From Rebecca billardiae RCC1528 (lineage: Eukaryota > Protista > Haptophyta), in NCBI GenBank assembly GCA_965240325.2, contig OZ251231.1, positions 1,860,001 to 1,924,000 of the forward strand: DNA of 64,000 nt, given 5' to 3'. The translations under genes and the position numbers were made by a program. Position 1 is the stretch's first letter. Each line of letters begins with the position of its first letter. This document shows, one piece after another, positions 15,173 through 58,484 of the stretch. The notes under the pieces are model-generated. The model was not told the DNA's origin. It searched no databases and saw only the letters and a list, made by a program, of their open reading frames with translations.

Positions 15173-15205
<33 letters not shown>

Positions 15206-15349
15206 CGGAGGCGGGCTCGGCAGCGGGCTGGGTGGTGGTGGCGGCGGCGGGCTCGGCGGCGGGGGGCTCGGCGGCGGGCTCGGCGGCGGTGGCGGCGGGG
15301 AGCTTGGCGGCGGCGGGCTCGGCGGTGGCGACGGCGGCGGACTCGGCGG

Positions 15350-15382
<33 letters not shown>

Positions 15383-15526
15383 CGGCGGCGGGCTCGGCAG
15401 CGGGCTGGGTGGTGGTGGCGGCGGCGGGCTCGGCGGCGGGGGGCTCGGCGGCGGGCTCGGCGGCGGTGGCGGTGGGGAGCTTGGCGGCGGCGGGCTCGGC
15501 GGTGGCGACGGCGGCGGGCTCGGCGG

Positions 15527-15559
<33 letters not shown>

Positions 15560-15704
15560 CGGAGGCGGGCTCGGCAGCGGGCTGGGTGGTGGTGGCGGCG
15601 GCGGGCTCGGCGGCGGGGGGCTCGGCGGCGGGCTCGGCGGCGGTGGCGGCGGTGAGCTTGGCGGCGGCGGGCTCGGCGGTGGCGACGGCGGCGGACTCGG
15701 CGGT

Positions 15705-15736
<32 letters not shown>

Positions 15737-16220
15737 CGGAGGCGGGCTCGGCAGCGGGCTGGGTGGTGGTGGCGGCGGCGGGCTCGGCGGCGGCGCGCTC
15801 GGCGGCGGGCTCGGCGGCGGGCTGGGTGGTGGCGGCGGCGGTGAGCTCGGTGGCGGCGGGCTCGGCGGCGGGCTCGGCGGCGGGCTGGGTGGTGGCGGCG
15901 GCGGTGAGCTCGGTGGCGGCGGGCTCGGAGGCGGGCTTGGCGACGGGCTTGGCGGCGGTGGTGGCGGTGAGCTCGGCGGCCGCGGGCTGGGTGGCGGGCT
16001 TGGCGGCGGCGACGGCGGTGGGCTAGGGGGTGGCGGCGGCGGGCTCGGCGGCGGGGCCGGCAGTGGGCTGGGTGGCGGCGGGCTGGGTGGCGGCGGGCTG
16101 GGCGGCGGGCTGGGCGGCGGCGGCGGTGGCGCGCTCGGCGGTGGCGAAGTCGGCTGCGGCGCAGGCGGGGGACTTGGTGGCGGGCTTGGCGGCGGCGGCG
16201 GCGGCAGGCTCGGCGGTGAG

Positions 16221-16251
<31 letters not shown>

Positions 16252-16786
16252 GCGGCGGCGCAGGCGGCGGGCTGGGCGGGGGGCTTGGCAGCGGCGGAGG
16301 CGGCGGGCTCGGCGGCGGCGGGCTGGGCGGCGGCGCAGGCGGCGGGCTGGGCGGCGGGCTTGGCGGCGGCGGAGGCGGCAGGCTCGGTGGCGGCGGGCTC
16401 GGTGGCGGGCTCGGCGGCGGCGGCGGCGGCGGGCTTGGCGGCGGCGGGCTCGGTGGCGGCGATGGCGGCAGGCTTGGCGGAGGCGCGCTTGGTGGCGGTG
16501 GGCTCGGCGGCGGGCTCGGCGGCGGGCTCGGTGGAGGCGGCGGTGGCGGGCTCGGCGGCGGGGGGCTCGGCGGCGGCGCAGGCGGCGGGCTGGGCGGCGG
16601 GCTTGGCGGCGGCGGCGGCGGCAGGCTCGGTGGCGGCGGGCTCGGCGGGGGGCTTGGCAGCGGCGGAGGCGGCGGGCTCGGCGGCGGGGGGCTCGGCGGC
16701 GGCGCAGGCGGCGGGCTGGGCGGCGGGCTCGGCGGCGGCGGCGGCGGCAGGCTCGGTGGCGGCGGGCTCGGCGGCGGGCTCGGTGG

Positions 16787-16819
<33 letters not shown>

Positions 16820-30266: not shown

Positions 30267-32744
30267 GTAGCTTAGTGTCTCAGTGCGAGTACGGCCTGCG
30301 GACCGAGCAGGTCGGACCGGCGTCGCGCCGCACGAGCAGCACCACATCTTCTCCGCCTCGCTGCGCTTCCAGAGCCCCGCCGAGCAGGAGGAGTACATCC
30401 GCTGGCGGGGCGAGACGAAGGGCTCGCTGCCGAATCTCGACTTTGAGTTTGCGTGGTATCCGGGCTATCCGGACGGCCACGCGGCTTTGACGAGGTGGCC
30501 CGAGCGCCCCGAGCCGGACAGCCGGACAGGGCCCCGTGTCGATGGGATATGGGCAACTCGCAGCGGGCAAGTGCGTTACGAGTGAGCTTAGCAGGGCTCA
30601 CTAACTCAGTCAGAATAGCTTATTAGCTGGCGCAGCATGAAAACATTCTGATGACGATGCGTGATTGAGTGACGATATATATCTCGGTCCGACTTCAAAG
30701 AGTCGTAGTAGAACGGTAGACTTGAGTCACGATACAGTTACTAAGTACAGTATAGCCGTACCGGTACCCGCGCGGGCCGCGCGTGGTCACTCACCGTGGA
30801 CGTGGTGTACAGCTAGACTGCATACAGTCCTGACTCGCCCGCCCCGGGCTGACCGAGTCACCGAGTCATCCGAGTGCCAAATCCGGTAGGGCGGTAGTAT
30901 GTAAACTATCAGTAGGATGATGTGACACTGACGACAGAGTAGTCTGACGCCCGATCAGTAGACAGACAGTAGCTACTCTCACGTCTCTCGAGACTCGACC
31001 GTCTGGGCGTCTGGCGTCTCGCTCAACACGCCACGCGGCCATCACGCGCCCACGCGGTGCCGCCGCCGTGCGCGCCGTGGCGCGGTGCCGCGGGTGCCGG
31101 GTCGGCGGCGGGCCGCCGTTCCCGGCCCGCCATTTTCCGGCGCACGGCCACGGGCGCAACCGTGGCTGTTCCGTAGTCATAGTTCCGAATGAAGCGGCGA
31201 CGAATCAGTACTCGAAGAGTATATAGCTAAGTAAGCTACTATCGCCATTACCAAATACCGATTACGCGGTCCGCGCGTGACCCGGCCTGCGCAGCTGTCA
31301 GTCCGTGCGCTCGGGCGCGCGGCTGCGCCGCCGCTGGTGCCGGGCCGGGGCCCGCGGGCGGCCCGCGTCCGGCGCGCTGGCCCCGCGGCCGCGCGGCTGA
31401 TGGCGGCGGCGCCTCGCCGCCCCCTGACGGGGCGGCGCACTGTCTGTCCGACCGACTCCGCGCGGGACTCATTCCGGGTCCGACAGTCAGTCAGTCAGGC
31501 CGTCAGGCGCGCGGACAGACAATGGTGCTGCGGCCGGAACTGCCAGCCAGTGCCCGACGGTCCGACTAGTTAGTCAGTCAGGCGGCTGGCGAGTGGCGGG
31601 CTGGCGGCCCGCCGAGAGTGTCGCGGGAGTGCCGCACCGGCCCCGGTGGCCGGTGCGGCACTGCCGACTGCGGCCGGCCCGGGGCCGGGTGCGCGCGCCG
31701 GCGCGCCGGCGCGGCCGCGCGGGCCAGGCCGGCCGCCCGCCGCCGGGCCCTGCGCCTGTGGCCCGCGGCCTGGCCCCTGCGCCGGCGCCGGCGCTGGCGG
31801 CCGCCGGCGCGGCCGCCGGCGCCCGCTCGGCCCCGCCCGCCCGCCCGCCCGCCCGGGGCCCGGCCGGCCCCGCGGCGGCCCGCGCCGCGGGCCTGCCGGA
31901 GTGAGCCTGCCCCGGGCAGCCCCGGGCCGCGCCGGGCGCCGCGCGGGGCGCCGGGGCGGCGGTGGGCCAACGGTGTGACTGACGCCGAGGCAATGATAAT
32001 GCCAGGCGGGCTTGAGGGGAAAAACGATCTCCCTATGTGGGTCACACAGGTTACTATGATCTCCTGAATTACGATAACTAAATCCTGGAACATGTAGCAC
32101 ACGGGTACATGCGATTAAATATGGATGCACACCTATGTGCCTATACGTGTAGTATTATGATACATCAATAATCCAATATCGATATGAGTGATAATACACG
32201 TATTTAATAAATTATTTAATTTTTACAATGGTGCATGAACGGATTTTAATTTTAACGGCCGCATATTTTTATGCCATTCAAAATATGCCATTCAAAATAT
32301 TTAATTGTTTTCAAATAAATTTTAAGACTGCTCTAGTACTTACAATTTAAGACTGCTCCGAAGTTTTATAATACAATATCAGTGTATAATTCGAACGTAT
32401 TTTAATAATGCTGCGGAATAAAATATATTATTATAGACTGATACGCACATATTTTAATAATGCCGCGGAATAAAATAGATCGATGTTTTAAGACTACTCG
32501 GGTCTTTATTTAATTATAATATCGCGGTGTAGTTGAAATATATGTTTTAAGACTGCTCCGGTAGTCGAATTATAGTCGTCTCGCCGTGGTCGGGTTTTAT
32601 TGTCTTGGTGCTGGTATATTCGTTGCTAGTTGTTATTATTCGAGTGGTTACCCAGCATGGAGGTGTTGCGCTTTTTTGGCGAGGGTAAGTCGAATGGCGG
32701 TGGTTACAGGTTACATCGCCTTATCTCGCTGAAATTTGGCGAGA

Positions 32745-33112
32745 GATTCTGAGCTGCTTCGTGTACAGGCGCCCAGAATTTCGGCAGGATATTCTGAACG
32801 GCTGCATGGGTTGACGCCCAAGATTTTGGCGGGAGATTCTGACCGGCTGCATATGTTCACGCCCAGAATTTTGGCGGGAGGATTCTGACCGGCTGCATTG
32901 TTTCACGCCCAGAATTTTGGCAGAAGGTTCTGAGCGGCTGTATGTACTGGCGCCTGAATTTCGGCTGGAGATTCTGAGCGGCGGTATATGGGTTCACGCC
33001 CAGAATTTTGGCAGAAGGTTCTGAGCGGTTGTATGTACTGGCGCCTGAATTTCGGCTGGAGATTCTGAGCGGCGGTATGGGTTCACGCCCAGAATTTTGG
33101 CAGAAGGCTCTG
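32745..33112. repeat. 45-bp (90-bp dimer) satellite, left part
   Basis: gcccagaatt(t/c)ggc...ttctgagcgg units, interrupted by the Copia at CTCTG. Confidence 0.9.
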
Positions 33113-33443
33113 TGTCAAAGGGTGAAGAGAGCGACGGGGCCGTGAGGCCCGAGGCCGAGGCGTGACGCTGAGGCTCGTCGGTGCGGACGACGAGGAGTTG
33201 GGAGTTCGACTCGAGGTGCGGTGAAGCGACACGGAACTGAACTGCCCTGGCGAGGAAGGAATCCCGAGCCGTCTAAGACTGTGCTGGAGGCACTGATAGC
33301 CATCAACGGGTAAGTCGGGAAAGTGGCCATGATGGGCGCGTGTATGATCCCGACTCGATAATGAATGTCGGTGTAGTGTGACGGTTGGTGATCCGGGTGT
33401 GTACGCACGGGAGAGCGAGTCCGGGTAACGTTGGATCTTGACA
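33113..33443 (-). repeat. 3' LTR (331 bp)
   Basis: Matches the 5' LTR apart from an extra 6-bp cgaggc. Confidence 0.95.
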
Positions 33444-33709
33444 CCCCCACCCAATCGCAGCGGTGGTCGTACGAAACCTGGTCGACCCGAAGGGACTGGG
33501 TGTAGACGTGTGACCATCGTGTGATTGTAGATGATGCGATGTTGCCGTATGGGATGCATGCGTCGGAGCGGTTGTCCGAGTAGACGATGTAGAAGTCGGG
33601 CGAGTCGGTGCCGGCAGCGTCTCCGTTCAGAAGAGACAGCGTGAGGTCAATGTGCGTCCGACGAGCGGCGACCGATGTAGCACTGGGACTTCGTGTGTGC
33701 GGCGAGGCC

Positions 33710-35560
33710 TTACATGCCCAGGATCTGAGCACGAAGTTTGAGGAAGGCGGCCGGGCCGAGCGGCTTGGTCATGATGTCGGCCGGGTTCTCGGTGCCGGGG
33801 ATCAAGAAGAGCTTGAAGGTGCCGGCGCGGACGTGCTGACGGTTCCAGTGGTACTGGACGTCGATGTGCTTGGTGCGGTTGTGGTACTTCTCGTTGTCCG
33901 TGAGGTCCACCACCGCCTTGTTGTCCTCGAAGAGCTTGGTCGGCGCGAGCTGCGGGTAGCCGAGGTCGGTGAGCAGCTTGCGCATGAAGATGATCTCCTT
34001 GCCGGCGGAGGTGACGGCCATGTACTCAGCTTCGGTCGAGCTCAGAGCCGTCGTGCGCTGCTTCTCGCGGCGGCCGCTCACCGTCGAGCCGCAGAGGTGC
34101 ATCACGTAGCCGGTGACAGACTTGCGCTCGTCGTGGAGGTCGTTGGCGTAGTCGGCGTCCACGTACGCGACGAGCATGACGTCCGAGCCCGAGCGGAAGA
34201 AGAGGCCGTGGTTCGGCGTGCCGGCGAGGTAGCGGATGACGCGCTTGGCAGCCTCGAGGTGCTTCTTGCCCGGCTTGGACATGAAGTGGGTGAGCGTGCC
34301 GACGGCGTAGGCGATGTCCGGGCGAAACTGCGTGATGTGGATGAGCGAGCCGACCACGGAGCGGAAGAACGTCGTCGTCTCCGCGTCGAGCGCGTCTGAC
34401 TCGGAGCACGGGCCGAGCTTGAGGCCCTCGGTCATCGGCGTGTCGGACGTGTTGCAGTTCATGAAGCCCGTCTTCTCGAGGAGCTCGAGGATGTTCTTGG
34501 TGACGGTCACCATGATGCCGTCCTTGGAGCGCGTGAGCGTGGCCGACAGGTAGCCGTCGATGTCGGCCGTGATGGTCATCTTGTACGAGGATGTGATCTT
34601 CGAGATGAAGTTGTCGCAGGCGGTCGGGTCGTCGCTGTCGTCGAGGATGAGCATGTCGTCCACGTAGATGCACACGGCGATGATGCCCGACTGCGTGTTG
34701 AGGACATAGAGGCACGGGTCGGCCTGGCTCTGCGCGAACCCGTACTCCTTCATCCAGTCGTCGATCATGAGACGCCAGTTGCGGCCGGACTGCTTGAGAC
34801 CGTAGAGGCTCTTGAGGAGGCGCAGCACGACGTCGCCCTTCGTCTTCGGCTTGTACCCGAGCGGCAGCTCGAGGTAGATCTCGTAGTCGATCGGCGCGTT
34901 GAGGTACGCCGTCGTGAAGTCGCCGTGGAAGAGGCGGCGCTGCTTGGCCGCGGCGATGGCGATGATCATCTTGAGGGTCTCGTAGCGGACGACCGAGGAG
35001 AAGGTCTCGTCGTAGTCGATGCCCTCGATCTGCGTGAAGCCCTTGCCCACGACGCGGGCCTTGAACCGCTTGATGTTGCCCTTCTTGTCGCGCTTGATGT
35101 TGAACACGGGCGCCGCCTTCAGCGTGCGCATCCCCGGCTTGCGCGGCACCTCCACCCACGTGTCGTTGGCCAGGATGGAGGCGTACTCGGCGTCGAGAGC
35201 GGCGGCGAACTGCGTCGCATGCGGGCCGTTGAGTGCTTGCACCGCCGTCGGCGTGTCCGAGAGTCCGATGGCGAGCAGGAGCGCGTAGATGCGCGGCAGC
35301 TTGGAGTAAGTCGGCGACGCGACCGAGTTGACGTGTGCGCGCGCGCGCGTGCGAGATGAGGGCGGGTCGTCGTCGTTGAGCGCGTTGCCGACATCGAGGG
35401 AGTCCTCGGCGCCGGCGGCGTCGTCGTCAGCGTCTCCGACGTAGGCGTGCGGTGCGTCCCCCACCCGCTCAGCGTGTCCGAATGCGCCGGCGCCATCGCG
35501 GCGCCGGACGGCGCCGTGGGAACTTCCCCCATTACCCACATCGGCAGCATGGAAGGTTGA
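33710..35560 (-). CDS. pol: Copia reverse transcriptase - RNase H
   Basis: KARVVGKGFTQIEGIDYDETF, LLKSLYGLKQSGRNW, IYVDDM, YVDADYA, SSTEAEY, FEDNKA, NPADIMTKPL. Lies in the +1 frame relative to the upstream ORF. Confidence 0.95.
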   Translation of the reverse strand, partial: STFHAADVGNGGSSHGAVRRRDGAGAFGHAERVGDAPHAYVGDADDDAAGAEDSLDVGNALNDDDPPSSRTRARAHVNSVASPTYSKLPRIYALLLAIGLSDTPTAVQALNGPHATQFAAALDAEYASILANDTWVEVPRKPGMRTLKAAPVFNIKRDKKGNIKRFKARVVGKGFTQIEGIDYDETFSSVVRYETLKMIIAIAAAKQRRLFHGDFTTAYLNAPIDYEIYLELPLGYKPKTKGDVVLRLLKSLYGLKQSGRNWRLMIDDWMKEYGFAQSQADPCLYVLNTQSGIIAVCIYVDDMLILDDSDDPTACDNFISKITSSYKMTITADIDGYLSATLTRSKDGIMVTVTKNILELLEKTGFMNCNTSDTPMTEGLKLGPCSESDALDAETTTFFRSVVGSLIHITQFRPDIAYAVGTLTHFMSKPGKKHLEAAKRVIRYLAGTPNHGLFFRSGSDVMLVAYVDADYANDLHDERKSVTGYVMHLCGSTVSGRREKQRTTALSSTEAEYMAVTSAGKEIIFMRKLLTDLGYPQLAPTKLFEDNKAVVDLTDNEKYHNRTKHIDVQYHWNRQHVRAGTFKLFLIPGTENPADIMTKPLGPAAFLKLRAQILGM

Positions 35561-38500
35561 GCGGCGGCGGCGTCGGCGGCAGCTGCGGCGCGGCGGCGAG
35601 CGGGTCGCGCGCGATGTGAGCGGCGTCGGGGTGGTCGACGTAGAGCGTGTCCTCGTCGAAGCGCACGTGGTGCGAGATGATGAACATGTCCGGGACGATC
35701 TGGCCGTCGCCGGGCACGCGCACGATGATCGCCTTCGTGTAGCGCGTGCGGTTCTTGGGCGGGACGTTCACCATGTGGCCGTCGTCGCCGTGGCCGACGT
35801 AGACGCCCATGACGGCGCGCGGGTCGAGCTTCTTGAAGTGCGTGTTCGGCGGCACGACGTAGGCGACGCAGCCGAAGACACGCAGCTGAGCGAGATCTGG
35901 CGGGAAGCCGCGCAGCAGCTCGAACGGCGTCTTGTCGAACGTCACCGGCGTGGCGATGCGGCGGATGATGTACGCGGCGTGGCGCAGCGCGTCCTTGGCG
36001 TAGGCGTCGATGCGCAGCTTGGAGTGGAACAGGATCGAGCGCGCCGCGTTGAAGAGCGTCTGGATGAAGCGCTCGGCGATCGGGTTGTGCTGCGGCGTGT
36101 CGGGCGGCGTGACCTGGTTGGGGGCGATGCCGTGGGCGCGGCAGATGCCCTCCCACTCGGTCGAGTTGAGCTCGGGGGCGCCGTCGACGCGGAAGCGGCT
36201 GACGGTGTGGCCGTAGACCGACATGTCGTCGATGAAGCGTCGCATCGCCTCCGGTGCGTCCGAGCGGCGGTCGAGGAAGTAGATGAAGCCGGCCCGGGTG
36301 TAGTCGTCGACAAACACGATCACGTAGAACTTGGCAAAATCGTCCGGGTTCACGATGAACTTGCCGTCGACGTAGCCGGCGACGTCGACATGGACGAGCA
36401 CGAACGCCTTCTCCGAGCGGGGCGACGTGGACGTGAACGAGTTGCGCTTCATCTTGGCGAGCGCGCACGAGCAGTCCGACTTGAGGTTGCGCGCGCCGAG
36501 GTGCTTGGATGCGGCGAGCGTGCGGTTGACGGCAGCGGCGTGAGCGTGGCCGAGGCGGAGGTGAGCGACGCGCGAGAGCTCGTCGGTGTCCTTGAACTCG
36601 ACGCAGCACTCGTCGCAGAACGTGTCGTCGTCCGGCGCGAGGTCGGCGGTCTGCGAGGCCTGGTCCATGGTCACGATGACGAGAGCGCCGTCGGACGTGG
36701 GCGGCTGCGCCGGCGGCGGCGGCAGCGAGGACTGAAGCGGGGCGGGCGGCACGTGGAGGCCGGACGCGGCGATGGTGGGCGACGGCGAGTCGTCGTCCGG
36801 GATGAAGACGGCGCATGCGAGATCGCGGCCGTGCAGCGGAACGAGCTTGTCGCCGTACAGCAGGTACCGGCCGCCCTGCGCGTGGATCGGGGTGACGCCG
36901 GACATGAAGGTGGTCGGCGCCGCGAGCGAGATGAACGAGATGCCGAGGCGGGTCAGCCAAGTGTCGCTCATGTAGAAGCCCGGGACGTCTGGAGAGAGCG
37001 GGACGTCCGTGAGCGGCAGCGTGATGAGGTCGCCGTCGATCGAGCGCATGCCGAGGGCGAACGAGGCCGAGGTGTTGATCTTGATCCGCGTGCCGTTCGC
37101 CGCGCGCGCCTCCGAGAACTGGCGGAAGGACTTGGCGGCAAACAGAGAGAACGCGGTTGAGGCGATGGTGGTGTCCGCGCCGGTGTCGATCATGATCGAG
37201 ATGCTCGCCTGGGCGATGTCGCCTGTGAACGGCGTGCCGATGGCGAAGGAGATCGTCGAGTGCACGTTCTCAATCTCCTCCGGATCGGCGAGCAACGGCT
37301 GCTGGATGCAGGTCGGGTTGATCGGGTCAAACGAGCGGGAGACGCCGCAGATGATGGGCTGGCCGGTGCGGGCGCAGCAGGTGACCGCGGCGAGGATCGA
37401 GATGATGGCGAGGACGGCGAGCGCGACGAGGAAGAGGAAGGCACCGTGCGAGGACTTGAAGAGCGCGCGGAGCCGACCCTCGTGCTTGAACCGCGGCGGC
37501 GGCGGCTCGTACTGGACGATCAGGTCATCGATGTAGGCGCCGGCGCCACCGAAAGGCCGTGCGCGATGGATCTCGGCCTCGGCCGCGGCGGCTGCGGCGA
37601 GGAACTCGTACGGGCTGAGCGTGAGCGGCTCTCCGGCGAGCTGGCCGAGGTGGCCGAGCGGGTAGGTGTGGTTGCCCGCGATGGAGACGTCGTCCAGGCT
37701 GGGGCAGTCGTCGGACGTGTCCGAGGCCGCATCCGAAGCCGAGGTCGTGGTCGAGGGAGTGCACGGGACAAGGTCCGGCAGCTCATCGTCCGTCTCCGAG
37801 GCCGAGTCGGAGGCGGAGGCGTCGCGGTCGTCCGGGGGGTTGGCGAGACGGAACGGCTTGAGGTGGAACGGCTCGTAGGAGGCGGGCTTGCGGATGGACT
37901 GGCGCAACGCCATGATGAGCACATTCTGGCCGCGCTCGAGCTCGGCCGCCGTCGCGAGCTGGATCGGGGAGCCGGCCTCAGACGCCGGCGGCGACGGCGA
38001 GTCGACCTGCGTCGGCGGCGACGGCGGGCCGAAGGGCGGCGGCGGCGAGCTGGCCTGCGTCGGCGGGTCGAACAGTGGCGGCGGCGGCGAGTAGAGCGCC
38101 GGCTGCTGGTCGATGAGCGACAGCGCCGGCTGCTGCGAGTCGGCGGGCGGCGGCAGCGGCGGCGTGTTGGTGAGCGCCGGCTGCGAGTTGGAGTGCGCCC
38201 GCGACAGCTGCGGGTCGGCGGGCGGCGGCGAGTTGGCGGGCGCCGGCGGCGGCGGCGGCGCGCCGGCGGGCTGCCGCGACGACGGCGTGAGGACGAGCGT
38301 CGGCAGCGAGTTGAAGCGCGCCCGCGACAGCGGCGAGTCGGCGGGCGGCTGCGAGTTGGCGGGCGGCGGCGGCGGCGCGTCGGCGTCGGTCGCCGCCGGC
38401 TGCGAGTTGGGGCCTGACGCCGAGCCCGAGATGGAGATGGCGTTGAGCGTCGGCGTGCCGTCCTGGATGAGCCGCACGCGCGTCGTGGTCGCCGACGGCT

Positions 38501-39467
38501 TCGCCCGCTGCGGCGTCGGCTGCGGCTGCGACTGCGAGGGCGCGGAGGGCACGCGCTGGAGCTTGTTGGACTTGTGAGTCGGGCGGCGCGCGCCGCCGGA
38601 GCGAGCGTCGGCTGCGGGCGTCGCGCCCGAGGAGCGCGAGGTGGACGTCTGGGGGCGGTTCGGGCAGTCGCGGTTCCAGTGCATGCCGCCGCAGTACTTG
38701 CACGGGGTAGGAGGCATGGATGCGCCGGGCTGGCCCTTGGAGGTGAGCGCGTTGACGGCCTGGCGGTTGGGGTTCGTGCCGTTGGCGGCGGCGGCGACGC
38801 GGTCGAGATCGTGCACGCGCTCGATGAGATCCTCCACAGAGATGGGCTGGTCGTTCATCGTCGCGATCACCGAGCTGACGAAGGACGGGTTGCGGCCGTA
38901 GAGGTTCACGAGGATGACGACGAGCGTGAAGATGTCGTCCTTGATCTCGACGCCGCGCAGCTCCGTGGCGTTGGACATCACACGAGCAGCAAAGGTGTGG
39001 AAGCTCTCGCTCGGCGACAGCTTGATCGAGAGCAGGGCGTACAGCTTGGCGACGAGCGAGGAGGGGCGGGAGCTGTTGCAGCGCACGTTGAGCGCGTTGA
39101 CGAGATGAGACAGCTCGAGCCCGAGACCCGAGTGCTGCAACTGCGCGATGATCGGGTCGAGGATGCGAGGAGCGACCGCCTTGAGAAGCAACTGCACGAT
39201 GAAAGCCTGCGTGCGCAGCTGCTTGGCCTGGATGGTGGCGGCGGCGGTGGACGGGGGGCAGACGATGGGCTTGTCCGCGCCGGTATCGTCCTTGCCCGGC
39301 TCGAGGGGCGAGGACGGGTTGGAGAACGCGAGCGCGACGTCCATGTCCGGCTTCGACGTGACCATGACCACAAGAACGGAGATGGCCGTGCGGAGGTCCT
39401 GCGGCTTGAGGACGAGAGCTCGCGGCGGGAGCTGGTCACGCATGTCGCCACCCGGCGGCTCCACCAT
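35532..39467 (-). CDS. gag-pol: Copia Gag - protease - integrase
   Basis: CCHC knuckle CKYCGGMHWNRDC, protease IDTGA, HLRLGH..CSC, integrase VHVD / VDDYTR / RVDGAPE / AER, and LRVFGC. Confidence 0.93.
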   Translation of the reverse strand: MVEPPGGDMRDQLPPRALVLKPQDLRTAISVLVVMVTSKPDMDVALAFSNPSSPLEPGKDDTGADKPIVCPPSTAAATIQAKQLRTQAFIVQLLLKAVAPRILDPIIAQLQHSGLGLELSHLVNALNVRCNSSRPSSLVAKLYALLSIKLSPSESFHTFAARVMSNATELRGVEIKDDIFTLVVILVNLYGRNPSFVSSVIATMNDQPISVEDLIERVHDLDRVAAAANGTNPNRQAVNALTSKGQPGASMPPTPCKYCGGMHWNRDCPNRPQTSTSRSSGATPAADARSGGARRPTHKSNKLQRVPSAPSQSQPQPTPQRAKPSATTTRVRLIQDGTPTLNAISISGSASGPNSQPAATDADAPPPPPANSQPPADSPLSRARFNSLPTLVLTPSSRQPAGAPPPPPAPANSPPPADPQLSRAHSNSQPALTNTPPLPPPADSQQPALSLIDQQPALYSPPPPLFDPPTQASSPPPPFGPPSPPTQVDSPSPPASEAGSPIQLATAAELERGQNVLIMALRQSIRKPASYEPFHLKPFRLANPPDDRDASASDSASETDDELPDLVPCTPSTTTSASDAASDTSDDCPSLDDVSIAGNHTYPLGHLGQLAGEPLTLSPYEFLAAAAAAEAEIHRARPFGGAGAYIDDLIVQYEPPPPRFKHEGRLRALFKSSHGAFLFLVALAVLAIISILAAVTCCARTGQPIICGVSRSFDPINPTCIQQPLLADPEEIENVHSTISFAIGTPFTGDIAQASISIMIDTGADTTIASTAFSLFAAKSFRQFSEARAANGTRIKINTSASFALGMRSIDGDLITLPLTDVPLSPDVPGFYMSDTWLTRLGISFISLAAPTTFMSGVTPIHAQGGRYLLYGDKLVPLHGRDLACAVFIPDDDSPSPTIAASGLHVPPAPLQSSLPPPPAQPPTSDGALVIVTMDQASQTADLAPDDDTFCDECCVEFKDTDELSRVAHLRLGHAHAAAVNRTLAASKHLGARNLKSDCSCALAKMKRNSFTSTSPRSEKAFVLVHVDVAGYVDGKFIVNPDDFAKFYVIVFVDDYTRAGFIYFLDRRSDAPEAMRRFIDDMSVYGHTVSRFRVDGAPELNSTEWEGICRAHGIAPNQVTPPDTPQHNPIAERFIQTLFNAARSILFHSKLRIDAYAKDALRHAAYIIRRIATPVTFDKTPFELLRGFPPDLAQLRVFGCVAYVVPPNTHFKKLDPRAVMGVYVGHGDDGHMVNVPPKNRTRYTKAIIVRVPGDGQIVPDMFIISHHVRFDEDTLYVDHPDAAHIARDPLAAAPQLPPTPPPLNLPCCRCG

Positions 39468-39791
39468 GTCAAAGGGTGAAGAGAGCGACGGGGCCGTGAG
39501 GCCCGAGGCGTGACGCTGAGGCTCGTCGGTGCGGACGACGAGGAGTTGGGAGTTCGACTCGAGGTGCGGTGAAGCGACACGGAACTGAACTGCCCTGGCG
39601 AGGAAGGAATCCCGAGCCGTCTAAGACTGTGCTGGAGGCACTGATAGCCATCAACGGGTAAGTCGGGAAAGTGGCCATGATGGGCGCGTGTATGATCCCG
39701 ACTCGATAATGAATGTCGGTGTAGTGTGACGGTTGGTGATCCGGGTGTGTACGCACGGGAGAGCGAGTCCGGGTAACGTTGGATCTTGACA
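39467..39791 (-). repeat. 5' LTR (325 bp)
   Basis: TG...CA ends, with the PBS immediately adjacent. Confidence 0.95.
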
Positions 39792-40520
39792 CTCTGAGCG
39801 GCTGTATGTACTGGCGCCCAGAATTTCGGCTGGAGATTCTGAGCGGCGGTATGGGTTGACGCCCAGAATTTTGGCAGAAGGTTCTGAGCAGTTGTATGTA
39901 CTGGCGCCTGAATTTCGGCTGGAGATTCTGAGCGGCGGTATGGGTTCACGCCCAGAATTTTGGCAGAAGGCGCTGAGCGGCTGTATGTACTGGCGCCCAG
40001 AATTTCGGCTGGAGATTCTGAGCGGCGGTATGGGTTCACGCCCAGAATTTTGGCAGAAGGCTCTGAGCGGCTGTATGTACTGGCGCCCAGAATTTCGGCT
40101 GGAGGTTCTGAGCGGCGGTATGGGTTGCGCCCAGAATTTTGGCAGAATATTCCGAGCGGCTGTATGTACTGGCGCCTAGAATTTCGGCTGGAGATTCTGA
40201 GCGACTGCATGGGTTGCCCAGAATTTCGGCGGGAGATTCTGGGCGACTGCATGGGCTGGCGCCCAGAATTTCGGCGCGAGATTCTGAGCTGCTGCATAGG
40301 TTGAGCCCAGAATTTTGGCAGAATATTCCAAGCAGCTGTATGTACTGGCGACCAGAATTTCGGCATGAGACTCTGTGAGAGTTGTATGTACTGATCCCCA
40401 GACTTTTGGCGAGGGATTCCGAGCCGCTGTATGTACTGGCGACCAGAATTTCAGCGGAAGATTATGAACCGCTGCACGGGTTGGCGCACAGAATATCGGC
40501 AAGGTATTCTGAGCTCTCTG
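39792..40520. repeat. 45-bp (90-bp dimer) satellite, right part
   Basis: Period 90 (tggcgcccag at 39991 and 40081) with 45-bp halves. Halves contain a CAGAA(T)...(A)TTCTG dyad; the array degenerates rightwards. Confidence 0.9.
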
Positions 40521-40525
40521 AATCA

Positions 40526-43500
40526 TCGTTACAGCTTGCAACCGGCCGTTACTGTCCTCACCTGCCAGCACCTGCCTCCGGAGTCCCTGGCCTCCGATGT
40601 AGCCAGTTACCTGGTTACACAGGTTACACAGGTTACATGGTTACACCGGCCGTTACAGCTCGCGACCGGCCGTTACGGTCCCCATCTACCAGCTCCTGCC
40701 CCAGACACCCTGGCCTCCGATGTAACCAGTTACCTGGTTACACAGGTTACACAGGTTACACAGGTTACAAGGTTACACCGGCCGTTACAGCTCGCGACCG
40801 GCCGTTACGGTCCCCAGCTGCCAGCTCCTGCCTCCAGAGTCCCTGGCCTCCGATGTAACCAGTTACCTGGTTACACAGGTTACTAAGGTTACACCGACCG
40901 TTACAGCTCGCGACCAGCCGTTACGGTCCCCACTACCTGCCATTGCTCCTGCCTCCAGAGTCCCTGGCCTCCGATGTAACCAGTTACCTGGTTACACAGG
41001 TTACAAGGTTACACCGGCCGTTACAGCTCGCGACCGACCGTTACGGTCCCCACCTGCCAGCTCCTGCCCCAGACACCCTGGCCTCCGATGTAACCAGTTA
41101 CCTGGTTACACAGGTTACAAGGTTACACCGGCCGTTACAGCTCGCGATCGGCCGTTACGGTCTCCACTACCTGCCATTGCTCCTGCCTCCAGAGTCCCTG
41201 GCCTCCGATGTAACCAGTTACATGGTTACACAGGTTACAAGGTTACACCGGCCGTTACAGCTCGCAACCGGCCGTCACGGTCCCTCCCACCTGCCAGCTC
41301 TTGCCTCAGACAGACAGACACTCTGCCCTCCGATGTAACCAGTTACCTGGTTACACAGGTTACAGGGTTACACCGGCCGTTACAGCTCGCTACCGGCCGT
41401 TACGGTCCCCACTACCTGCCATTGCTCCTGCCTCCAGAGTCCCTGGCCTCCGATGTAACCAGTTACCTGGTTACACAGGTTACAAGGTTACACCGGCCGT
41501 TACAGCTCGCGATCGGCCGTTACGGTCTCCACTACCTGCCATTGCTCCTGCCTCCAGAGTCCCTGGCCTCCGATGTAACCAGTTACCTGGTTACACAGGT
41601 TACAAGGTTACACCGGCCGTTACAGCTCGCAACCGGCCGTTACGGTCCCTCCCACCTGCCAGCTCTTGCCTCAGACAGACAGACACTCTGCCCTCCGATG
41701 TAACCAGTTACCTGGTTACACAGGTTACAAGGTTACACCGGCCGTTACAGCTCGCGACCGGCCGTTACGGTCCCCACTACCTGCCATTGCTCCTGCCTCC
41801 AGAGTCCCTGGCCTCCGATGTAACCAGTTACCTGGTTACACAGGTTACAAGGTTACACCGGCCGTTACAGCTCGCGACCGGCCGTTACGGTCCCCACTAC
41901 CTGCCATTGCTCCTGCCTCCAGAGTCCCTGGCCTCCGATGTAACCAGTTACCTGGTTACACAGGTTACAAGGTTACACCGGCCGTTACAGCTCGCGACCG
42001 GCCGTTACGGTCCCCACTACCTGCCATTGCTCCTGCCTCCAGAGTCCCTGGCCTCCGATGTAACCAGTTACCTGGTTACACAGGTTACAAGGTTACACCG
42101 GCCGTTACAGCTCGCGACCGGCCGTTACGGTCCCCGCCTGCCAGCTCCTGCCCCAGACACCCTGGCCTCCGATGTAACCAGTTACCTGGTTACACAGGTT
42201 ACAAGGTTACATCGGCCGTTACAGCTCGCGATCGGCCGTTACGGTCTCCACTACCTGCCATTGCTCCTGGCCCAGCCAGTCCCTGGCCTCCGATGTAACC
42301 AGTTACCTCGTTACACAGGTTACAAGGTTACACGGGCCGTTACAGCTCGCGACCGGCCGTTACGGTCGGCCCACCTGCCAGCTCCTGCCTCAGACACTCT
42401 GGCCTCCGATGTAACCAGTTACCTGGTTACACAGGTTACAAGGTTACACCGGCCGTTACAGCTCGCGATCGGCCGTTACGGTCTCCACTACCTGCCATTG
42501 CTCCTGCCTCCAGAGTCCCTGGCCTCCGATGTAACCAGTTACCTGGTTACACAGGTTACAAGGTTACACCGGCCGTTACAGCTCGCAACCGGCCGTTACG
42601 GTCCCTCCCACCTGCCAGCTCTTGCCTCAGACAGACAGACACTCTGCCCTCCGATGTAACCAGTTACCTGGTTACACAGGTTACAGGGTTACACCGGCCG
42701 TTACAGCTCGCGACCGGCCGTTACGGTCCCCACTACCTGCCATTGCTCCTGCCTCCAGAGTCCCTGGCCTCCGATGTAACCAGTTACCTGGTTACACAGG
42801 TTACAAGGTTACATCGGCCGTTACAGCTCGCGACCGGCCGTTACGGTCCCCACTACCTGCCATTGCTCCTGCCTCCAGAGTCCCTGGCCTCCGATGTAAC
42901 CAGTTACCTGGTTACACAGGTTACAGGGTTACACCGGCCGTTACAGCTCGCGACCGGCCGTTACGGTCCCCACTACCTGCCATTGCTCCTGCCTCCAGAG
43001 TCCCTGGCCTTCGATGTAACCAGTTACCTGGTTACACAGGTTACAAGGTTACACCGGCCGTTACAGCTCGCGACCGGCCGTTACGGTCCCCACTACCTGC
43101 CATTGCTCCTGCCTCCAGAGTCCCTGGCCTCCGATGTAACCAGTTACCTGGTTACACAGGTTACAAGGTTACACCGGCCGTTACAGCTCGCGACCGGCCG
43201 TTACGGTCTCCACTACCTGCCATTGCTCCTGCCTCCAGAGTCCCTGGCCTTCGATGTAACCAGTTACCTGGTTACACAGGTTACAAGGTTACACCGGCCG
43301 TTACAGCTCGCGACCGGCCGTTACGGTCCCCACTACCTGCCATTGCTCCTGCCTCCAGAGTCCCTGGCCTCCGATGTAACCAGTTACCTGGTTACACAGG
43401 TTACAAGGTTACACCGGCCGTTACAGCTCGCGATCGGCCGTTACGGTCTCCACTACCTGCCATTGCTCCTGCCTCCAGAGTCCCTGGCCTCCGATGTAAC

Positions 43501-46500
43501 CAGTTACATGGTTACACAGGTTACAGGGTTACACCGGCCGTTACAGCTCGCAACCGGCCGTCACGGTCCCTCCCACCTGCCAGCTCTTGCCTCAGACAGA
43601 CAGACACTCTGCCCTCCGATGTAACCAGTTACCTGGTTACACAGGTTACAGGGTTACACCGGCCGTTACAGCTCGCGACCGGCCGTTACGGTCCCCACTA
43701 CCTGCCATTGCTCCTGCCTCCAGAGTCCCTGGCCTCCGATGTAACCAGTTACCTGGTTACACAGGTTACAAGGTTACACCGGCCGTTACAGCTCGCGATC
43801 GGCCGTTACGGTCTCCACTACCTGCCATTGCTCCTGCCTCCAGAGTCCCTGGCCTCCGATGTAACCAGTTACCTGGTTACACAGGTTACAAGGTTACACC
43901 GGCCGTTACAGCTCGCAACCGGCCGTTACGGCCCCTCCCACCTGCCAGCTCTTGCCTCAGACAGACAGACACTCTGCCCTCCGATGTAACCAGTTACCTG
44001 GTTACACAGGTTACAAGGTTACACCGGCCGTTACAGCTCGCGACCGGCCGTTACGGTCCCCACTACCTGCCATTGCTCCTGCCTCCAGAGTCCCTGGCCT
44101 CCGATGTAACCAGTTACCTGGTTACACAGGTTACAAGGTTACACCGGCCGTTACAGCTCGCGACCGGCCGTTACGGTCCCCACTACCTGCCATTGCTCCT
44201 GCCTCCAGAGTCCCTGGCCTCCGATGTAACCAGTTACCTGGTTACACAGGTTACAAGGTTACACCGGCCGTTACAGCTCGCGACCGGCCGTTACGGTCCC
44301 CACTACCTGCCATTGCTCCTGCCTCCAGAGTCCCTGGCCTCCGATGTAACCAGTTACCTGGTTACACAGGTTACAAGGTTACACCGGCCGTTACAGCTCG
44401 CGACCGGCCGTTACGGTCCCCGCCTGCCAGCTCCTGCCCCAGACACCCTGGCCTCCGATGTAACCAGTTACCTGGTTACACAGGTTACAAGGTTACATCG
44501 GCCGTTACAGCTCGCGATCGGCCGTTACGGTCTCCACTACCTGCCATTGCTCCTGGCCCAGCCAGTCCCTGGCCTCCGATGTAACCAGTTACCTCGTTAC
44601 ACAGGTTACAAGGTTACACGGGCCGTTACAGCTCGCGACCGGCCGTTACGGTCGGCCCACCTGCCAGCTCCTGCCTCAGACACTCTGGCCTCCGATGTAA
44701 CCAGTTACCTGGTTACACAGGTTACAAGGTTACACCGGCCGTTACAGCTCGCGATCGGCCGTTACGGTCTCCACTACCTGCCATTGCTCCTGCCTCCAGA
44801 GTCCCTGGCCTCCGATGTAACCAGTTACCTGGTTACACAGGTTACAAGGTTACACCGGCCGTTTTAGCTCGCAACCGGCCGTTACGGTCCCTCCCACCTG
44901 CCAGCTCTTGCCTCAGACAGACAGACACTCTGCCCTCCGATGTAACCAGTTACCTGGTTACACAGGTTACAGGGTTACACCGGCCGTTACAGCTCGCGAC
45001 CGGCCGTTACGGTCCCCACTACCTGCCATTGCTCCTGCCTCCAGAGTCCCTGGCCTCCGATGTAACCAGTTACCTGGTTACACAGGTTACAAGGTTACAT
45101 CGGCCGTTACAGCTCGCGACCGGCCGTTACGGTCCCCACTACCTGCCATTGCTCCTGCCTCCAGAGTCCCTGGCCTTCGATGTAACCAGTTACCTGGTTA
45201 CACAGGTTACAGGGTTACACCGGCCGTTACAGCTCGCGACCGGCCGTTACGGTCCCCACTACCTGCCATTGCTCCTGCCTCCAGAGTCCCTGGCCTTCGA
45301 TGTAACCAGTTACCTGGTTACACAGGTTACAAGGTTACACCGGCCGTTACAGCTCGCGACCGGCCGTTACGGTCCCCACTACCTGCCATTGCTCCTGCCT
45401 CCAGAGTCCCTGGCCTCCGATGTAACCAGTTACCTGGTTACACAGGTTACAAGGTTACACCGGCCGTTACAGCTCGCGACCGGCCGTTACGGTCCCCACT
45501 ACCTGCCATTGCTCCTGCCTCCAGAGTCCCTGGCCTTCGATGTAACCAGTTACCTGGTTACACAGGTTACAAGGTTACACCGGCCGTTACAGCTCGCGAC
45601 CGGCCGTTACGGTCCCCACTACCTGCCATTGCTCCTGCCTCCAGAGTCCCTGGCCTCCGATGTAACCAGTTACCTGGTTACACAGGTTACAAGGTTACAC
45701 CGGCCGTTACAGCTCGCAACCGGCCGTTACGGTCTCCACCTGCCAGCTCCTGCCTCCAGAGTCCCTGGCCTCCGATGTAACCAGTTACCTGGTTACACAG
45801 GTTACAAGGTTACACCGGCCGTTACAGCTCGCGACCGGCCGTTACGGTCCCCACTACCTGCCATTGCTCCTGCCTCCAGAGTCCCTGGCCTTCGATGTAA
45901 CCAGTTACCTGGTTACACAGGTTACACGGTTACACCGGCCGTTACAGCTCGCGACCGGCCGTTACGGTCCCCACTACCTGCCATTGCTCCTGCCTCCAGA
46001 GTCCCTGGCCTCCGATGTAACCAGTTACCTGGTTACACAGGTTACAAGGTTACACCGGCCGTTACAGCTCGCGACCGGCCGTTACGGTCTCCACTACCTG
46101 CCATTGCTCCTGCCTCCAGAGTCCCTGGCCTTCGATGTAACCAGTTACCTGGTTACACAGGTTACAAGGTTACACCGGCCGTTACAGCTCGCGACCGGCC
46201 GTTACGGTCCCCACTACCTGCCATTGCTCCTGCCTCCAGAGTCCCTGGCCTTCGATGTAACCAGTTACCTGGTTACACAGGTTACAAGGTTACACCGGCC
46301 GTTACAGCTCGCGACCGGCCGTTACGGTCCCCACTACCTGCCATTGCTCCTGCCTCCAGAGTCCCTGGCGTCCGATGTAATCAGTTACCCGTGGTTACAC
46401 AGGTTACAGGGTTACACCGGCCGTCACAGCTCGCGACCGGCCGTTACGGTCCCCACCTGCCAGCTCCTGCCCCCAGACAGAGTCCCTGGCCTCCGATGTA

Positions 46501-46646
46501 ACCAGTTACCTGGTTACACAGGTTACAAGGTTACACCGGCCGTTACAGCTCGCAACCGGCCGTTACGGTCTCCACCTGCCAGCTCCTCCAGAGTCCCTGG
46601 CCTCCGATGTAACCAGTTACCTGGTTACACAGGTTACAAGGTTACA
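40526..46646. repeat. 120-bp GTTAC-rich satellite, ~51 monomers, with a 2286-bp higher-order repeat
   Basis: Monomer ccgatgtaaccagttacctggttacacaggttacaaggttacaccggccgttacagctcgcgaccggccgttacggtccccactacctgccattgctcctgcctccagagtccctggcct. Variant monomers recur at +2286. Confidence 0.97.
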
Positions 46647-48473
46647 GCCCGCGCCCCCAGGTGCGGATGGCGTGCTCCGCAGGCGGGGCGAGCGCGAGCG
46701 CACGGGGCACGGCGCTGCGGGCGCGGGTGTGCCCGCGGAGCCGGCGCATGCGGACGGGCTGTTGCGGGAGAGCATCTGACGCCCTCCTCCGCCGCTCGAC
46801 CTGCGCCACGCCTCTTTCGCCTCGGCTCGGGGCAGCGCGCACGCGCGCGCCGCCTCAAGGCCGGCATCGCCACAACCGACCGCGGGCGCGCGCACCGAGC
46901 ACGCGCGCAGTGCTGCTGCTCGAGCCGCCGGGCTCGCTGGCCCTGGCGCGCGGCGTGGTGGTGGGCGATCCGCTCCGCGGCGCGCGCGTCCGCGCCGCGC
47001 ACGTCGCGTCCGCTGCAGCGCTCGCCCGCTGGTGGTGGAGGGACAGCCGCTGGCCGGCCGGGCGCGCCACGCGCACCTCGGGCGTGCGCACGTGCGCGGC
47101 CGGCTCGGCGTGGCGCTGGACGCGGCCGGGGTCGCGTGGCTGCGCCGGGAGCTGCGGCGGCTATGCGCGCGCGCGCCGCGCCGAACGGCACCGCCGCCGC
47201 GGGCGCGCACGCCGGCGCCGAGGGGAGCGCGGCCCAGCGAGCGGCGGCGGCGGTGGCGGCGGGCGCAGCAGGCAGGGGCGGCGGCTGAGGCCGAGGCTGG
47301 GCTGACAGGCCTGCTGCGCGCTGCGCCCGCGCACGGCCTTTGCCTCGTGCGCCCGCGCGCGCCCGACGGCGGCGGCGGCGCCGACCCGCGCACCGAGCCG
47401 GCCCGAACGTGATGGTGGTTGCGACTTGCGCCTTGCGGGCGTGGCTCGTGGCTCACAGTGGCGATGCCCGCCCGGGCTGCCAGACATGATATACCGAGCC
47501 GAGCGGCCGCCGGGTGGCTCTGCCGGGCCGTGTGCGGGTGTCAGTCGTAGATCCGCTTCCGGGCAGACGGCACAAGTCCGGTCAGTCGTGGCGCGTGTTT
47601 GTGAATATTATTAGTCGTAGTGCACAGTGGCGTCAGATGCCGCAGTCTCAGTATGCGCACTTTAGTAGTTGGCACCGCGCGGCGGCCATGGGCATGGCCC
47701 CGACTCTCCGCTCCGGCGGACTGACCTCAGGCTCGGAGGATCGGCGAGCCCGCCGGCACCCAGCATCTCGCTACTTTCCAGACGTCGACCCCGCGCCACG
47801 GTGTAGTGGCGGGTTGCGCTGCGTACGCCGTACGGACAGCTGGCCGGTGCGGGTCTGCGGCCTGCGCGGCCGCGCGTGCCGCTTAGTTGGCAGTGGTGGG
47901 CTACGCGGCGCGCGGTTAGAGAGAATGAGGGGGCGCACGAGCGCGCGCGGGCGTGGGGCGCGGTGAAGATGTGCACCCAGCGTGCTTCACTGCGGAGGGC
48001 GCGTCTATGACCGCCCACAGTGGCGCTGCGGCGGGTCTCGCACTACGACAGCGGCACACAAGGGTACCGCTGCCATCAGCCGAGTGCGCCGAGCGGCGAG
48101 CGGGCCGCTGATCCACCTGGCGCGATCGAATGCGAGCGTAGTGCCGGTATGTACGCTGCACCGCGTGCACTGCTCGTTTCATACCCGATGACGTCCTGAC
48201 GTAAAGACGATTGGTGGTGAGTATGCTGGCTGTGTGCGCGAGCATGGCCACAACGTCGTGCCAGTTGCGGGGCCCTCTACCTTGAATAGTCCTTGAGTTG
48301 CGGTGCCGCGGTCATGGGTCGCGAGCAGAGTGTCGAAGGCGTGACTGTGTCGAGAGATCGGTGCGTGTGTTCGCCACCGGTTGCGTGACCGTCGGTCTTC
48401 GTCCGCAAACTCGCGTGCTTTCGCCGTCGTGCGCCATACTGTACGAGGTCGTCGCCCTTCCGCCCCCGCCTTC

Positions 48474-48803
48474 CGACGTGTTGTAACCTTGTAACCCTGT
48501 AACCGGTTACATGGCGAGCCGCCTCTCTTTCAGCGCGTTGACGCTGCTGTTTTTTTAATTAATTTTAATCATATGAAAAGCAAGCGCCGCATTATTCTAA
48601 AACAATAATGTGGCAGATGTTTTATTTATTGAAAGTCGACGTGTTGTAACCTTGTAACCCTGTAACCGGTTACATGGCGAGCCGCCTCTCTTTCAGCGCG
48701 TTGACGGCTGCTGTTTGTTTAGTTTAATCATGAAAAGCAAGAGCCGCATTATTGAAAACAATACGACTGTAGCAGACGTGTTATTTATTAATTGTTGAAA
48801 GTG
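48474..48803. repeat. Diverged tandem duplication (~163 bp) containing the inverted satellite core
   Basis: cgacgtgttgtaaccttgtaaccctgtaaccggttacatggcgagccgcctctctttcagcgcgttgac at ~48474 and ~48637. Confidence 0.85.
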
Positions 48804-49803
48804 ATTATGCTGCTATCCAAGCTACTGCGCAGCAGAAAAGTAATCTAGCAGACGGTTTATTTATTTTAATTCGTGGGATATTGAATCATAACGTATGATA
48901 CAATTAGACGCGAGGATTATTATTTATTATAATACTGTTTTCAGAATGAACGGATGTCGTCCTATTTTTCTTATTGGCCATTTCAATTCTTATTGGCCAT
49001 GTCAAGTGCGGGCTAGTTAGTTAAATGGCTGTAACCCGTCGTAACCTGGTTGAATTTTCCGTTGGTTACCAACGTCTTTGTTTGTTGAGCGTTTCCGGGA
49101 AAATGTCCCGAGTCTTACCCTTTCTGATAATAGTAGTTATTGGAATTGTAGTTATGCGATCGTAAAAGTAATTTGTTTCGGTAGAATATTTATTCGACTG
49201 TAGTGGCTGTAACCTTCCCATTTTTGTGAGGTTACACTCGAGTTTCGAATTCATGTGAATTTTCGTTCTCAATAGGAGAAGCGCGCGTGTCTACTGCCAT
49301 TCTCCGGTATGTGTACTTATGGGTGGGATACTTAGAGGGATAGCTATAGTTGACCATTGACTCCTCAAGCACCACTAATGCCAGCAGATCATTGCAACCA
49401 GCTACCCCAGGGGCGGACTGGCGTCAGAGGGCCTGTCCGGGCGGACCCACTCATCCACCGGGAAGCTGAAAGCTCTGGTCGGGGACTTTGGATGCCCGAG
49501 ACTCAATGCCAGACAATGCCAGACGACTCACGAGTCACGACAACGGTGGCATGATCTGATCGCTCAGGAGCCCACGGCGATGGGCTCAAGCTGCGGACGG
49601 GCTCGGAGGTGGAAGCGCGCTGCTGCGAGAAGCGACACCCGCTCGGCCTCCATGCTCGAGCGAGGGAGAAGCCCACCCCTCAGGTCGAGCGCTCCCGGCG
49701 CGTCGAGCGGCGGCCGACTTGACATGCGCGCACATTCGAGACAGAGGCAAACAAACAATCGCGAGGTTGGGCGTGCGGCGTGCGGGGCGGAGCGGCTCGG
49801 GTG

Positions 49804-51705: not shown

Positions 51706-52020
51706 CAAGCTGGTATTGAGCGGCGGCGGCGCGAGCGGTGCGAAGTGCCCGTCCAGCGCGACCTGGCAGCCTCCAGAAGTCGAACGCAAACGCGGCGCCA
51801 CTCACGGCCCACGGCCCACTGCCAGCCAACTCGGGGCCAGGGCGCATGCGCCCGCGGCTGGCAGCGCCGGAGCGACTGCGAGTGCGAGACGAGAGAGCGG
51901 GCAGACAGCTAGCAGCGGCGCGGATCGAATTATTCGTCCGGCCGGCTGCGCCGTGCCCGTGATGATCGAGAGTAGTGATGTCATCTATATAGTCTACACT
52001 CAGTGATGGCCCGCGGTGCA

Positions 52021-58000: not shown

Positions 58001-58150
58001 ATCATTTAGCTACTCCCGACGCTGTCACGCATAGCAAATGGTCCCACTAGACCCCTGATCGATATCCCAAAGTTTCAGAGCCAGAGTGCCAGTGCTTCAG
58101 GTACCTCGTCAGCTCGCCGCGACGGTCACAGTGGGGCTCTGACCCCACTA
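52021..58150 (+). mobile_element. Putatively autonomous DNA transposon (hAT-like DDE), 6130 bp
   Basis: TIRs TAGCGGGGTCAGAGC and GCTCTGACCCCACTA (14/15 match). Perfect 9-bp TSD CGCGGTGCA at 52012-52020 and 58151-58159. One large spliced ORF inside. Confidence 0.88.
52357..57953 (+). CDS. ~1773-aa hAT-like transposase: coiled coil + DDE core + chromo-like + two Tudor-like domains; introns 52397-52550, 55892-56012
   Basis: TTDGATS (D at ~54557), TTDKGGAD (D at ~54812), YCHEH (CxxH at ~55532), PTSKASERVFA (E at ~56655). WKLERL..YLARWLG is chromo-like; PGARVCW.. and VGDRVRA..WFYGEV..LTYDDDEVE are Tudor-like. Introns are frame-consistent GT-AG. Confidence 0.78.
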
Positions 58151-58484
58151 CGCGGTGCAGGGCGGAGCGCGTAGCGAATGGAGCCCCGCCGGGCCCGGGG
58201 GCCCTCACTACGTTGTCAAAAAGATCTTTTGATCAAAGAAAAGGGGATGGGGGACGATTTTGAGGGCTGTTGGAGGGTGAGTTTTCGACTTTTTGAGGGG
58301 GGGTATGCTGTCCATCACAGCTTAAAAGGCCGCGCCCGCTGCAATTCTTGTATCTACTATGGACGGACGTGGGATCACATACCCCGGGGGTGAAACAAGT
58401 GAGTATTCCTATCCCTCTTGTATGCTGAAGTACGAGTTTGCCGAGCGACGTTTGATTGTTTTGGGTCGAAAACAGCTATGAAGC

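Follow-up and report, generated by a model that had tools for sequence, protein, structure and literature searches.

Two tandem arrays within a probable non-autonomous DNA transposon family of the haptophyte Rebecca billardiae

Whether tandem arrays can reach a chromosomal site as the cargo of a mobile element, and what would move such an element, is the question raised by a stretch of 64,000 nucleotides from Rebecca billardiae RCC1528 (positions 1,860,001 to 1,924,000 of the forward strand of contig OZ251231.1, GenBank assembly GCA_965240325.2), here called the window. A satellite-bearing block within it, 31997-49384, had been read in a preliminary description as an insertion bounded by a 9-bp duplication, and as a Mutator-like non-autonomous element that moves whole satellite arrays and might seed heterochromatin or centromere-like domains. 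Set against the window's own assembly (72 Mb in 41 contigs), the interval 32005-49375 is very probably one of four full copies of a family of non-autonomous, cut-and-paste DNA transposons with terminal inverted repeats (TIRs), each carrying two tandem arrays with monomers of 45 and 120 bp. The family is new, its design being one already known from flies and bivalves.

Boundaries, target sites and related copies

The limits of the block are marked by the 9-mer TAATGCCAG, whose only two occurrences in the window are at 31997-32005 and 49376-49384; 100 shuffles of the window gave an expectation of 0.17, and one of them reached two occurrences. As described earlier, both occurrences coincide with sharp steps in base composition, a flank of 79% GC giving way to a subterminus of 35% GC at the left boundary and a subterminus of 41% GC to a flank of 66% GC at the right, and the cores GCTTGAGG and CCTCAAGC of a pair of imperfect inverted ends adjoin the two boundaries. 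When 400 bp from each end of the interval are used to search the 41 contigs, both ends are found paired, on the same strand, at three further loci: C37:809828-818322 (8,495 bp), C7:1793503-1800778 (7,276 bp) and C3:1788235-1796898 (8,664 bp). The same internal satellites lie between the ends at each locus. The target-site duplication (TSD) is 8 bp long in all four copies and different in each, being TAATGCCA in the window and GGGAGCTG, CTTCCGAA and CGCGATTG in the other three. The duplication is therefore 8 bp and not 9 bp as first proposed, because the ninth flanking base differs in the three other full copies; of the two ninth G residues in the window, the left one is the first base of the element and the right one a coincidence. 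Since the left G belongs to the element, the element extends from 32005 to 49375 (17,371 bp). It is flanked by TAATGCCA at 31997-32004, whose length of 8 bp is given by the other three copies, and by the matching copy at 49376-49383, so that the insertion itself stands with corrected limits and a shorter duplication.

In the 8-bp register the two 15-bp ends align without gaps, GGCGGGCTTGAGGGG against GTGGTGCTTGAGGAG, with 11 of 15 positions matching; the signal beyond 15 bp is too weak for a longer TIR to be claimed. The left TIR (32005-32019, plus strand) recurs unchanged at the C7, C3 and C26 ends, the left end on C37 having a 2-bp insertion, and the right TIR (49361-49375, minus strand, the reverse complement of which is GTGGTGCTTGAGGAG) is the same in all six right ends found in the genome. 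Read across the junctions, every copy begins with GGCGGGCT and finishes with CAAGCACCAC, the family ends being of the GGYGKGCTTGAGG type and the element termini GGC...CAC. A genome-wide TIR search by exact matching to a degenerate pattern, for either end, recovered both ends on C3, C7 and C14, the right end on C37, whose left end escaped because of its 2-bp insertion, and three solo ends at C26:1260015, C29:736429 and C23:808342. The boundaries are identical in the four full copies and the three solo ends. Four further pattern matches (one on C1, two on C26 and one on C29) were discarded as chance matches, lying in GC-rich, coding-like DNA that has neither AT-rich subtermini nor the GGTTAC motifs described below.

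Two of the solo ends are cut short by high-copy transposons, about 75 bp from the terminus on C26 and 555 bp from it on C29. The interrupting transposons at these loci (C26:1256000-1264000 and C29:732000-741999) are very young, one having over 1,000 first-look candidates with an identity of 98-99% and the other copies that are 99-100% identical; further in at the locus of the latter there is an open reading frame (ORF) with a weak match to DDE_3 (Tc1/IS630-like), together with internal repeats of about 204 bp. The third, diverged solo right end, on C23, is followed about 490 bp inside by the start of an intact 666-aa ORF (C23:808832-810832) with 12 Sel1 repeats and a zf-MYND finger, which is either a captured gene or the sign of a truncation beside a host gene.

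An unoccupied target is represented once in the assembly. The lower flank of the C37 copy (600 bp) matches C15:2079101-2079700 on the minus strand at 96% identity, and the first 128 bp of its upper flank match C15:2078985-2079108, also on the minus strand, at 95%. With one TSD copy included in each flank query, the two matches on C15 overlap, by their match coordinates, in exactly 8 bp (2079101-2079108), as would be expected of a single target that had not been duplicated. No family end was found on C15 by the end queries or by the TIR search of the assembly. C15 thus appears to hold a paralogous empty site for the C37 copy, in which the 8-bp target is present once. Collinearity with C37 reaches about 1.6 kb, at 92% identity, on one side of the site and ends 128 bp past it on the other, which makes C15 a short paralogous segment and not a second haplotype. 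For the window copy itself no paralogous empty site was found in the assembly, because its right flank is unique, and none could be rebuilt for the C7 copy because one of its flanks is a high-copy repeat and the other unique. The C7 target has about 21 C residues in a row on one side and about 14 G residues on the other (flanks C7:1793450-1793502 and C7:1800779-1800840), and it borders on a high-copy repeat that measures about 290 bp and has more than 340 first-look candidates. The rebuilt target of the window copy sits, as had been noted before, within an inverted repeat, GCAATGAT(11 nt)ATCATTGC; this repeat is real yet only anecdotal, nothing comparable being present in the flanks of the C37 and C3 copies. 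No public sequencing run was listed for the right junction of the window copy, and scans of metagenomes with the conserved terminal words gave no match.

Internal architecture and the two arrays

The order of parts is common to all four copies: an AT-rich left subterminus, the 45-bp array, the 120-bp array and a right part. In the window copy the left subterminus (32020-32730, plus strand) has 35% GC and contains four TTAAGACTGCTC repeats; across the copies it measures about 710-730 bp, and the left 1.1 kb that encloses it is 90-97% identical to the window copy. The 45-bp array, on the plus strand, is divided by a Copia retrotransposon into a left part of about 8 monomers (32731-33112) and a right part of about 16 (39792-40514), the latter with a higher-order periodicity of 89/179 bp. 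Its total of about 24 monomers compares with 18, 30 and 39 in the other three copies. The 120-bp array (40527-46646, plus strand) has about 47 monomers with 92% matches and an internal duplication period of 2,286 bp, each monomer containing GGTTAC, CGTTAC and GTAACC motifs. There are 17 such monomers in the C7 copy and 24 in the C3 copy, and the array on C37 consists of two blocks of about 5 and 6 monomers interrupted by two foreign blocks.

The right part, 2.7-3.4 kb long and 88-98% identical between copies, ends in an AT-rich subterminus with 160-bp repeats. In the window it comprises a non-coding piece of 73% GC (46647-48450, plus strand) and the right subterminus (48451-49360, plus strand, 41% GC) with two 160-bp repeats. 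The GC-rich piece is a patchwork, of which 46666-46891 is one arm of a foldback-like repeat with more than 70 locations, mostly in inverted pairs, and 46902-47394 resembles C35:453762-454324 at 78% identity. Both patches fall within the first 826 bases of the right-part query, and that stretch matches the C3 copy as well, at 91%; the acquisition of the patches therefore appears to predate the spread of the family. The foldback-like repeat is an observation in its own right, with arms of about 400 bp that stand as inverted pairs about 700 bp apart, for example at C12:1763649-1766873; each of the four copies of the element contains a fragment of such an arm. With these components the interior agrees with the preliminary description, which had also noted the lack of a DNA transposase. 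In the window copy Pfam finds no domain in ORFs of at least 120 aa outside the Copia, those of the GC-rich piece included, and Rfam gives no match in the whole window. An element that encodes no transposase would have to be mobilised in trans.

The Copia-type long terminal repeat (LTR) retrotransposon itself (33113-39791, minus strand, 6,679 bp) inserted into the 45-bp array of the window copy very recently. Its LTRs (33113-33443 and 39467-39791) agree at all 325 aligned bases and differ by one 6-bp indel, and the 5-bp TSD CTCTG stands at 33108-33112 and 39792-39796. On the minus strand there are ORFs of 609 aa, with RVT_2 (3e-52), and 1,311 aa, with rve and SH3_retrovirus. These two ORFs (reverse transcriptase and gag-protease-integrase) overlap by 8 nt in different frames at 35532-35539, which marks either a frameshift site or a recent break. 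Without the Copia the host element measures 10,687 bp, in line with the earlier estimate of about 10.7 kb.

The satellites do not occur apart from the ends, with one exception. Queries with the 45-bp array, the 120-bp array and the right part match only the four elements in the assembly, so that in this assembly the satellites are private to the family and not independent of its ends. With the ends paired elsewhere and an empty site for one copy, none of the three outcomes that the preliminary description named as refuting it is borne out. The exception is contig C25, the start of which holds about 100 bp of the 45-bp repeat (C25:2-104, 86%); no element end is detectable there, and the repeat could belong to an array that is free or unassembled.

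What links the arrays to the ends of the element is the hexamer GGTTAC and its reverse complement. GGTTAC occurs 163 times in the window and GTAACC 60 times, only three of these 223 occurrences falling outside the element and none in the Copia. The 120-bp array holds 203 of them, the left subterminus four, all forward, and the right part four forward and nine reverse, which are the 4 GGTTAC and 9 GTAACC motifs of its subterminus. The positions of the subterminal hexamers are conserved in the four copies and also in the solo right ends on C29 and C23, which are only 68-76% identical, and the remaining 9.4 kb of each of these two loci contains a single GGTTAC/GTAACC occurrence. Subterminal transposase-binding sites would be expected to show such a pattern, and GGTTAC is probably a binding motif of this kind. 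The 120-bp monomer, in turn, is essentially a cluster of GGTTAC/GTAACC hexamers, and we infer that the 120-bp satellite was most likely born by tandem amplification of the subterminal cluster of putative binding sites.

The kinship of the monomers indicates how the arrays have changed. When 120-bp monomers are compared with the Tandem Repeats Finder (TRF) consensus as reference monomer, those of the C7 copy have their nearest relatives in other copies (none of 16 within its own copy), and 40 of 44 monomers of the window copy have theirs within their own array, which shows a self-similarity peak at 2,286 bp. The array was therefore passed on by transposition, and its expansion in the window copy came later, in place. 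The sequence of events that these comparisons suggest starts with a fixed cargo of left subterminus, 45-bp array, 120-bp array, GC-rich patchwork and right subterminus, in which the arrays travel with the element. After insertion the arrays would grow or shrink by unequal exchange or replication slippage; in the window copy the 120-bp array may have reached its roughly 47 monomers by way of a 2.3-kb internal duplication, the entry of the very young Copia into the 45-bp array being the presumed next step.

Candidate mobilising mechanisms

Several observations weigh against a mobile, trans-mobilised family. No autonomous partner with these ends was recovered from the assembly by the degenerate TIR search. 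The inverted ends are short and imperfect, the copies differ from one another by 2-12%, the left end on C37 has gained its 2-bp insertion, and the mobility of the family may have ended. The domain check covered ORFs of at least 120 aa in one copy, and a short or intron-split gene may escape it; the case for GGTTAC as a binding site consists of the motif's distribution and conservation. Four copies with common boundaries and different duplications, and the empty site, nevertheless leave a non-autonomous TIR transposon as the very probable reading, and the alternatives to be weighed concern chiefly the enzyme that moved it.

The single most likely mobilising mechanism is hAT-like, favoured because an 8-bp TSD, short TIRs and subterminal hexamers occur together, yet the termini are unlike hAT ends and the assignment is a tentative one. 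The element would then be a non-autonomous, Ds-like hAT transposon, moved by a hAT transposase that makes cuts staggered by 8 bp and recognises the subterminal hexamer repeats. The subtermini of Ac/Ds carry clusters of AAACGG motifs, and the present element resembles Ac/Ds in its 8-bp TSD (shown by each of the four copies and by the empty site), its short, imperfect 15-bp TIRs, the oppositely oriented clusters of short motifs in both subtermini and the lack of a transposase; it differs in that its hexamer cluster is amplified to a 6-kb satellite. hAT ends are typically YARNG and their target consensus is nTnnnnAn, whereas the ends here begin with GGCGG and GTGGT and only one of the four TSDs, CTTCCGAA, fits the target consensus. 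hAT transposases do occur in the genome, one of them only 2.6 kb away in the window, but the TIR search of the genome found no hAT gene with these ends. The neighbouring hAT-like element begins with TAG and has neither a TIR match nor GGTTAC motifs; it occupies window positions 52012-58159, with the ends TAGCGGGGTCAGAGC and TAGTGGGGTCAGAGC, and is flanked on both sides by CGCGGTGCA. The one match to Dimer_Tnp_hAT (PF05699) in the genome is at C17:765118, and the 3.2 kb inspected there contain no GGTTAC.

Somewhat more doubtful is an origin in another superfamily with 8-bp TSDs (P, Novosib, Zisupton/KDZ or Merlin) or in an undescribed one, the enzyme being diverged, unrecognised or absent from the assembly. 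That no partner appeared among the inspected hAT and MULE (Mutator-like element) loci speaks for such an origin. The P superfamily has TSDs of 7-8 bp, and a P-type match (TNP-like_RNaseH_N, PF21787, a P-element-type RNase-H-like domain) lies at C21:1533970-1534365 in an uninterrupted frame of 1,322 codons, representing an intact P-superfamily transposase or a domesticated gene; no TIR match, however, was found on C21. Galileo, also of the P superfamily, has very long TIRs and a 7-bp TSD, unlike the present element. The two are alike in being DNA transposons whose tandem-repeat content varies between copies (PMC4168063). Merlin elements encode a DDE_Tnp_IS1595 transposase and have TSDs of 8-9 bp, terminal GG and TIRs of at least 24 bp, some copies also containing tandem repeats (PMC8101967). 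The present element shares with them the TSD length, GG at its left end and tandem repeats, but its TIR is 15 bp, its right end begins with GT, and a profile search of the genome for DDE_Tnp_IS1595 (PF12762) gave no match. Profile searches of the genome for KDZ and hAT-like_RNase-H also gave no match anywhere and are uninformative.

A Mutator-like origin, as first proposed, is unlikely, having lost its basis because the supposed 9-bp TSD is really 8 bp. Mutator elements and MULEs are marked by TSDs of 9-11 bp and TIRs of about 100 bp or more, with 8-bp TSDs in some lineages, against a TSD of 8 bp in four of four copies and a TIR of 15 bp here. A non-autonomous MULE would account for termini that start with G and, in the manner of Pack-MULEs, for the foreign fragments in the cargo, and Mutator elements occur in the genome with two MULE matches. 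The one inspected, at C23:326265-330030, has 124-bp TIRs unrelated to the present ends and no GGTTAC motifs. It is itself a compact MULE, its TIRs matching each other at 99% and its open frame running to more than 1,000 codons, and looks recently active.

Less likely still is that the transposase stands outside the recognised groups and that the 120-bp satellite is a functional array, in which some 150 predicted transposase-binding hexamers would act as a sponge or enhancer and serve as raw material for new satellites. The proposal arises because the genome yielded no enzyme that bears these ends and because the ends fit no 8-bp-TSD superfamily cleanly.

That the element functions in seeding heterochromatin or centromere-like satellite domains, the second proposal of the preliminary description, is very improbable. 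It does deliver satellite tracts of up to 6 kb to new sites, where an array can expand in place, and C25 starts with the 45-bp repeat. Yet there are only four copies, on four of the 41 contigs, the arrays measure 0.4-6 kb and are nowhere found outside the elements, and two of the insertions lie beside ordinary ORFs: the window copy is 1.1 kb upstream of an aldose 1-epimerase ORF (3.4e-65) and the C3 copy about 600 bp from an EF-hand ORF. Satellites of centromeres or heterochromatin are expected to form long arrays, one per chromosome, with CENH3 or heterochromatin marks, and the arrays described here do not look like such domains. Finally, that the 9-mer match is due to chance and the interval no insertion, for which the one shuffle in 100 with two matches might be cited, is already refuted by four copies with precise common boundaries, four TSDs and an empty site.

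Elsewhere in the window, positions 15001-17000 have 87% GC, a GC skew of +0.38 and an AT skew of -0.6, far beyond the window average.

Satellite-bearing transposons and the origin of satellites

TIR elements that lack a transposase and contain tandem repeats differing from copy to copy are well established, and a close design is that of Tetris in Drosophila virilis, a non-autonomous foldback transposon whose internal tandem repeats are able to feed satellite formation (PMC4079207). Tetris likewise encodes no protein, is bounded by TIRs, contains a variable number of internal tandem repeats and depends for its movement on an unidentified autonomous element acting in trans (PMC4079207). It differs in that its 220-bp repeats lie inside long inverted arms and have spread to kilobase-size satellite arrays outside the element (PMC4079207), whereas the Rebecca billardiae element has 15-bp ends and two arrays in one orientation in its middle, and no free arrays were found in the assembly.

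The design being known, the family opens no new question. It provides a clean and bounded case in which tandem arrays are carried to new sites inside a DNA transposon and then resized in place. The case is of modest interest for the clean proof of movement given by four copies with four TSDs and one empty site, for the presence of two different arrays in one element that is not of the foldback kind, and for the link between subterminal motif and satellite. For the alga itself the family is of use in annotating repeats, and for the general question of how transposons give rise to satellites it suggests that a satellite may originate by amplification of an element's own subterminal motif cluster.

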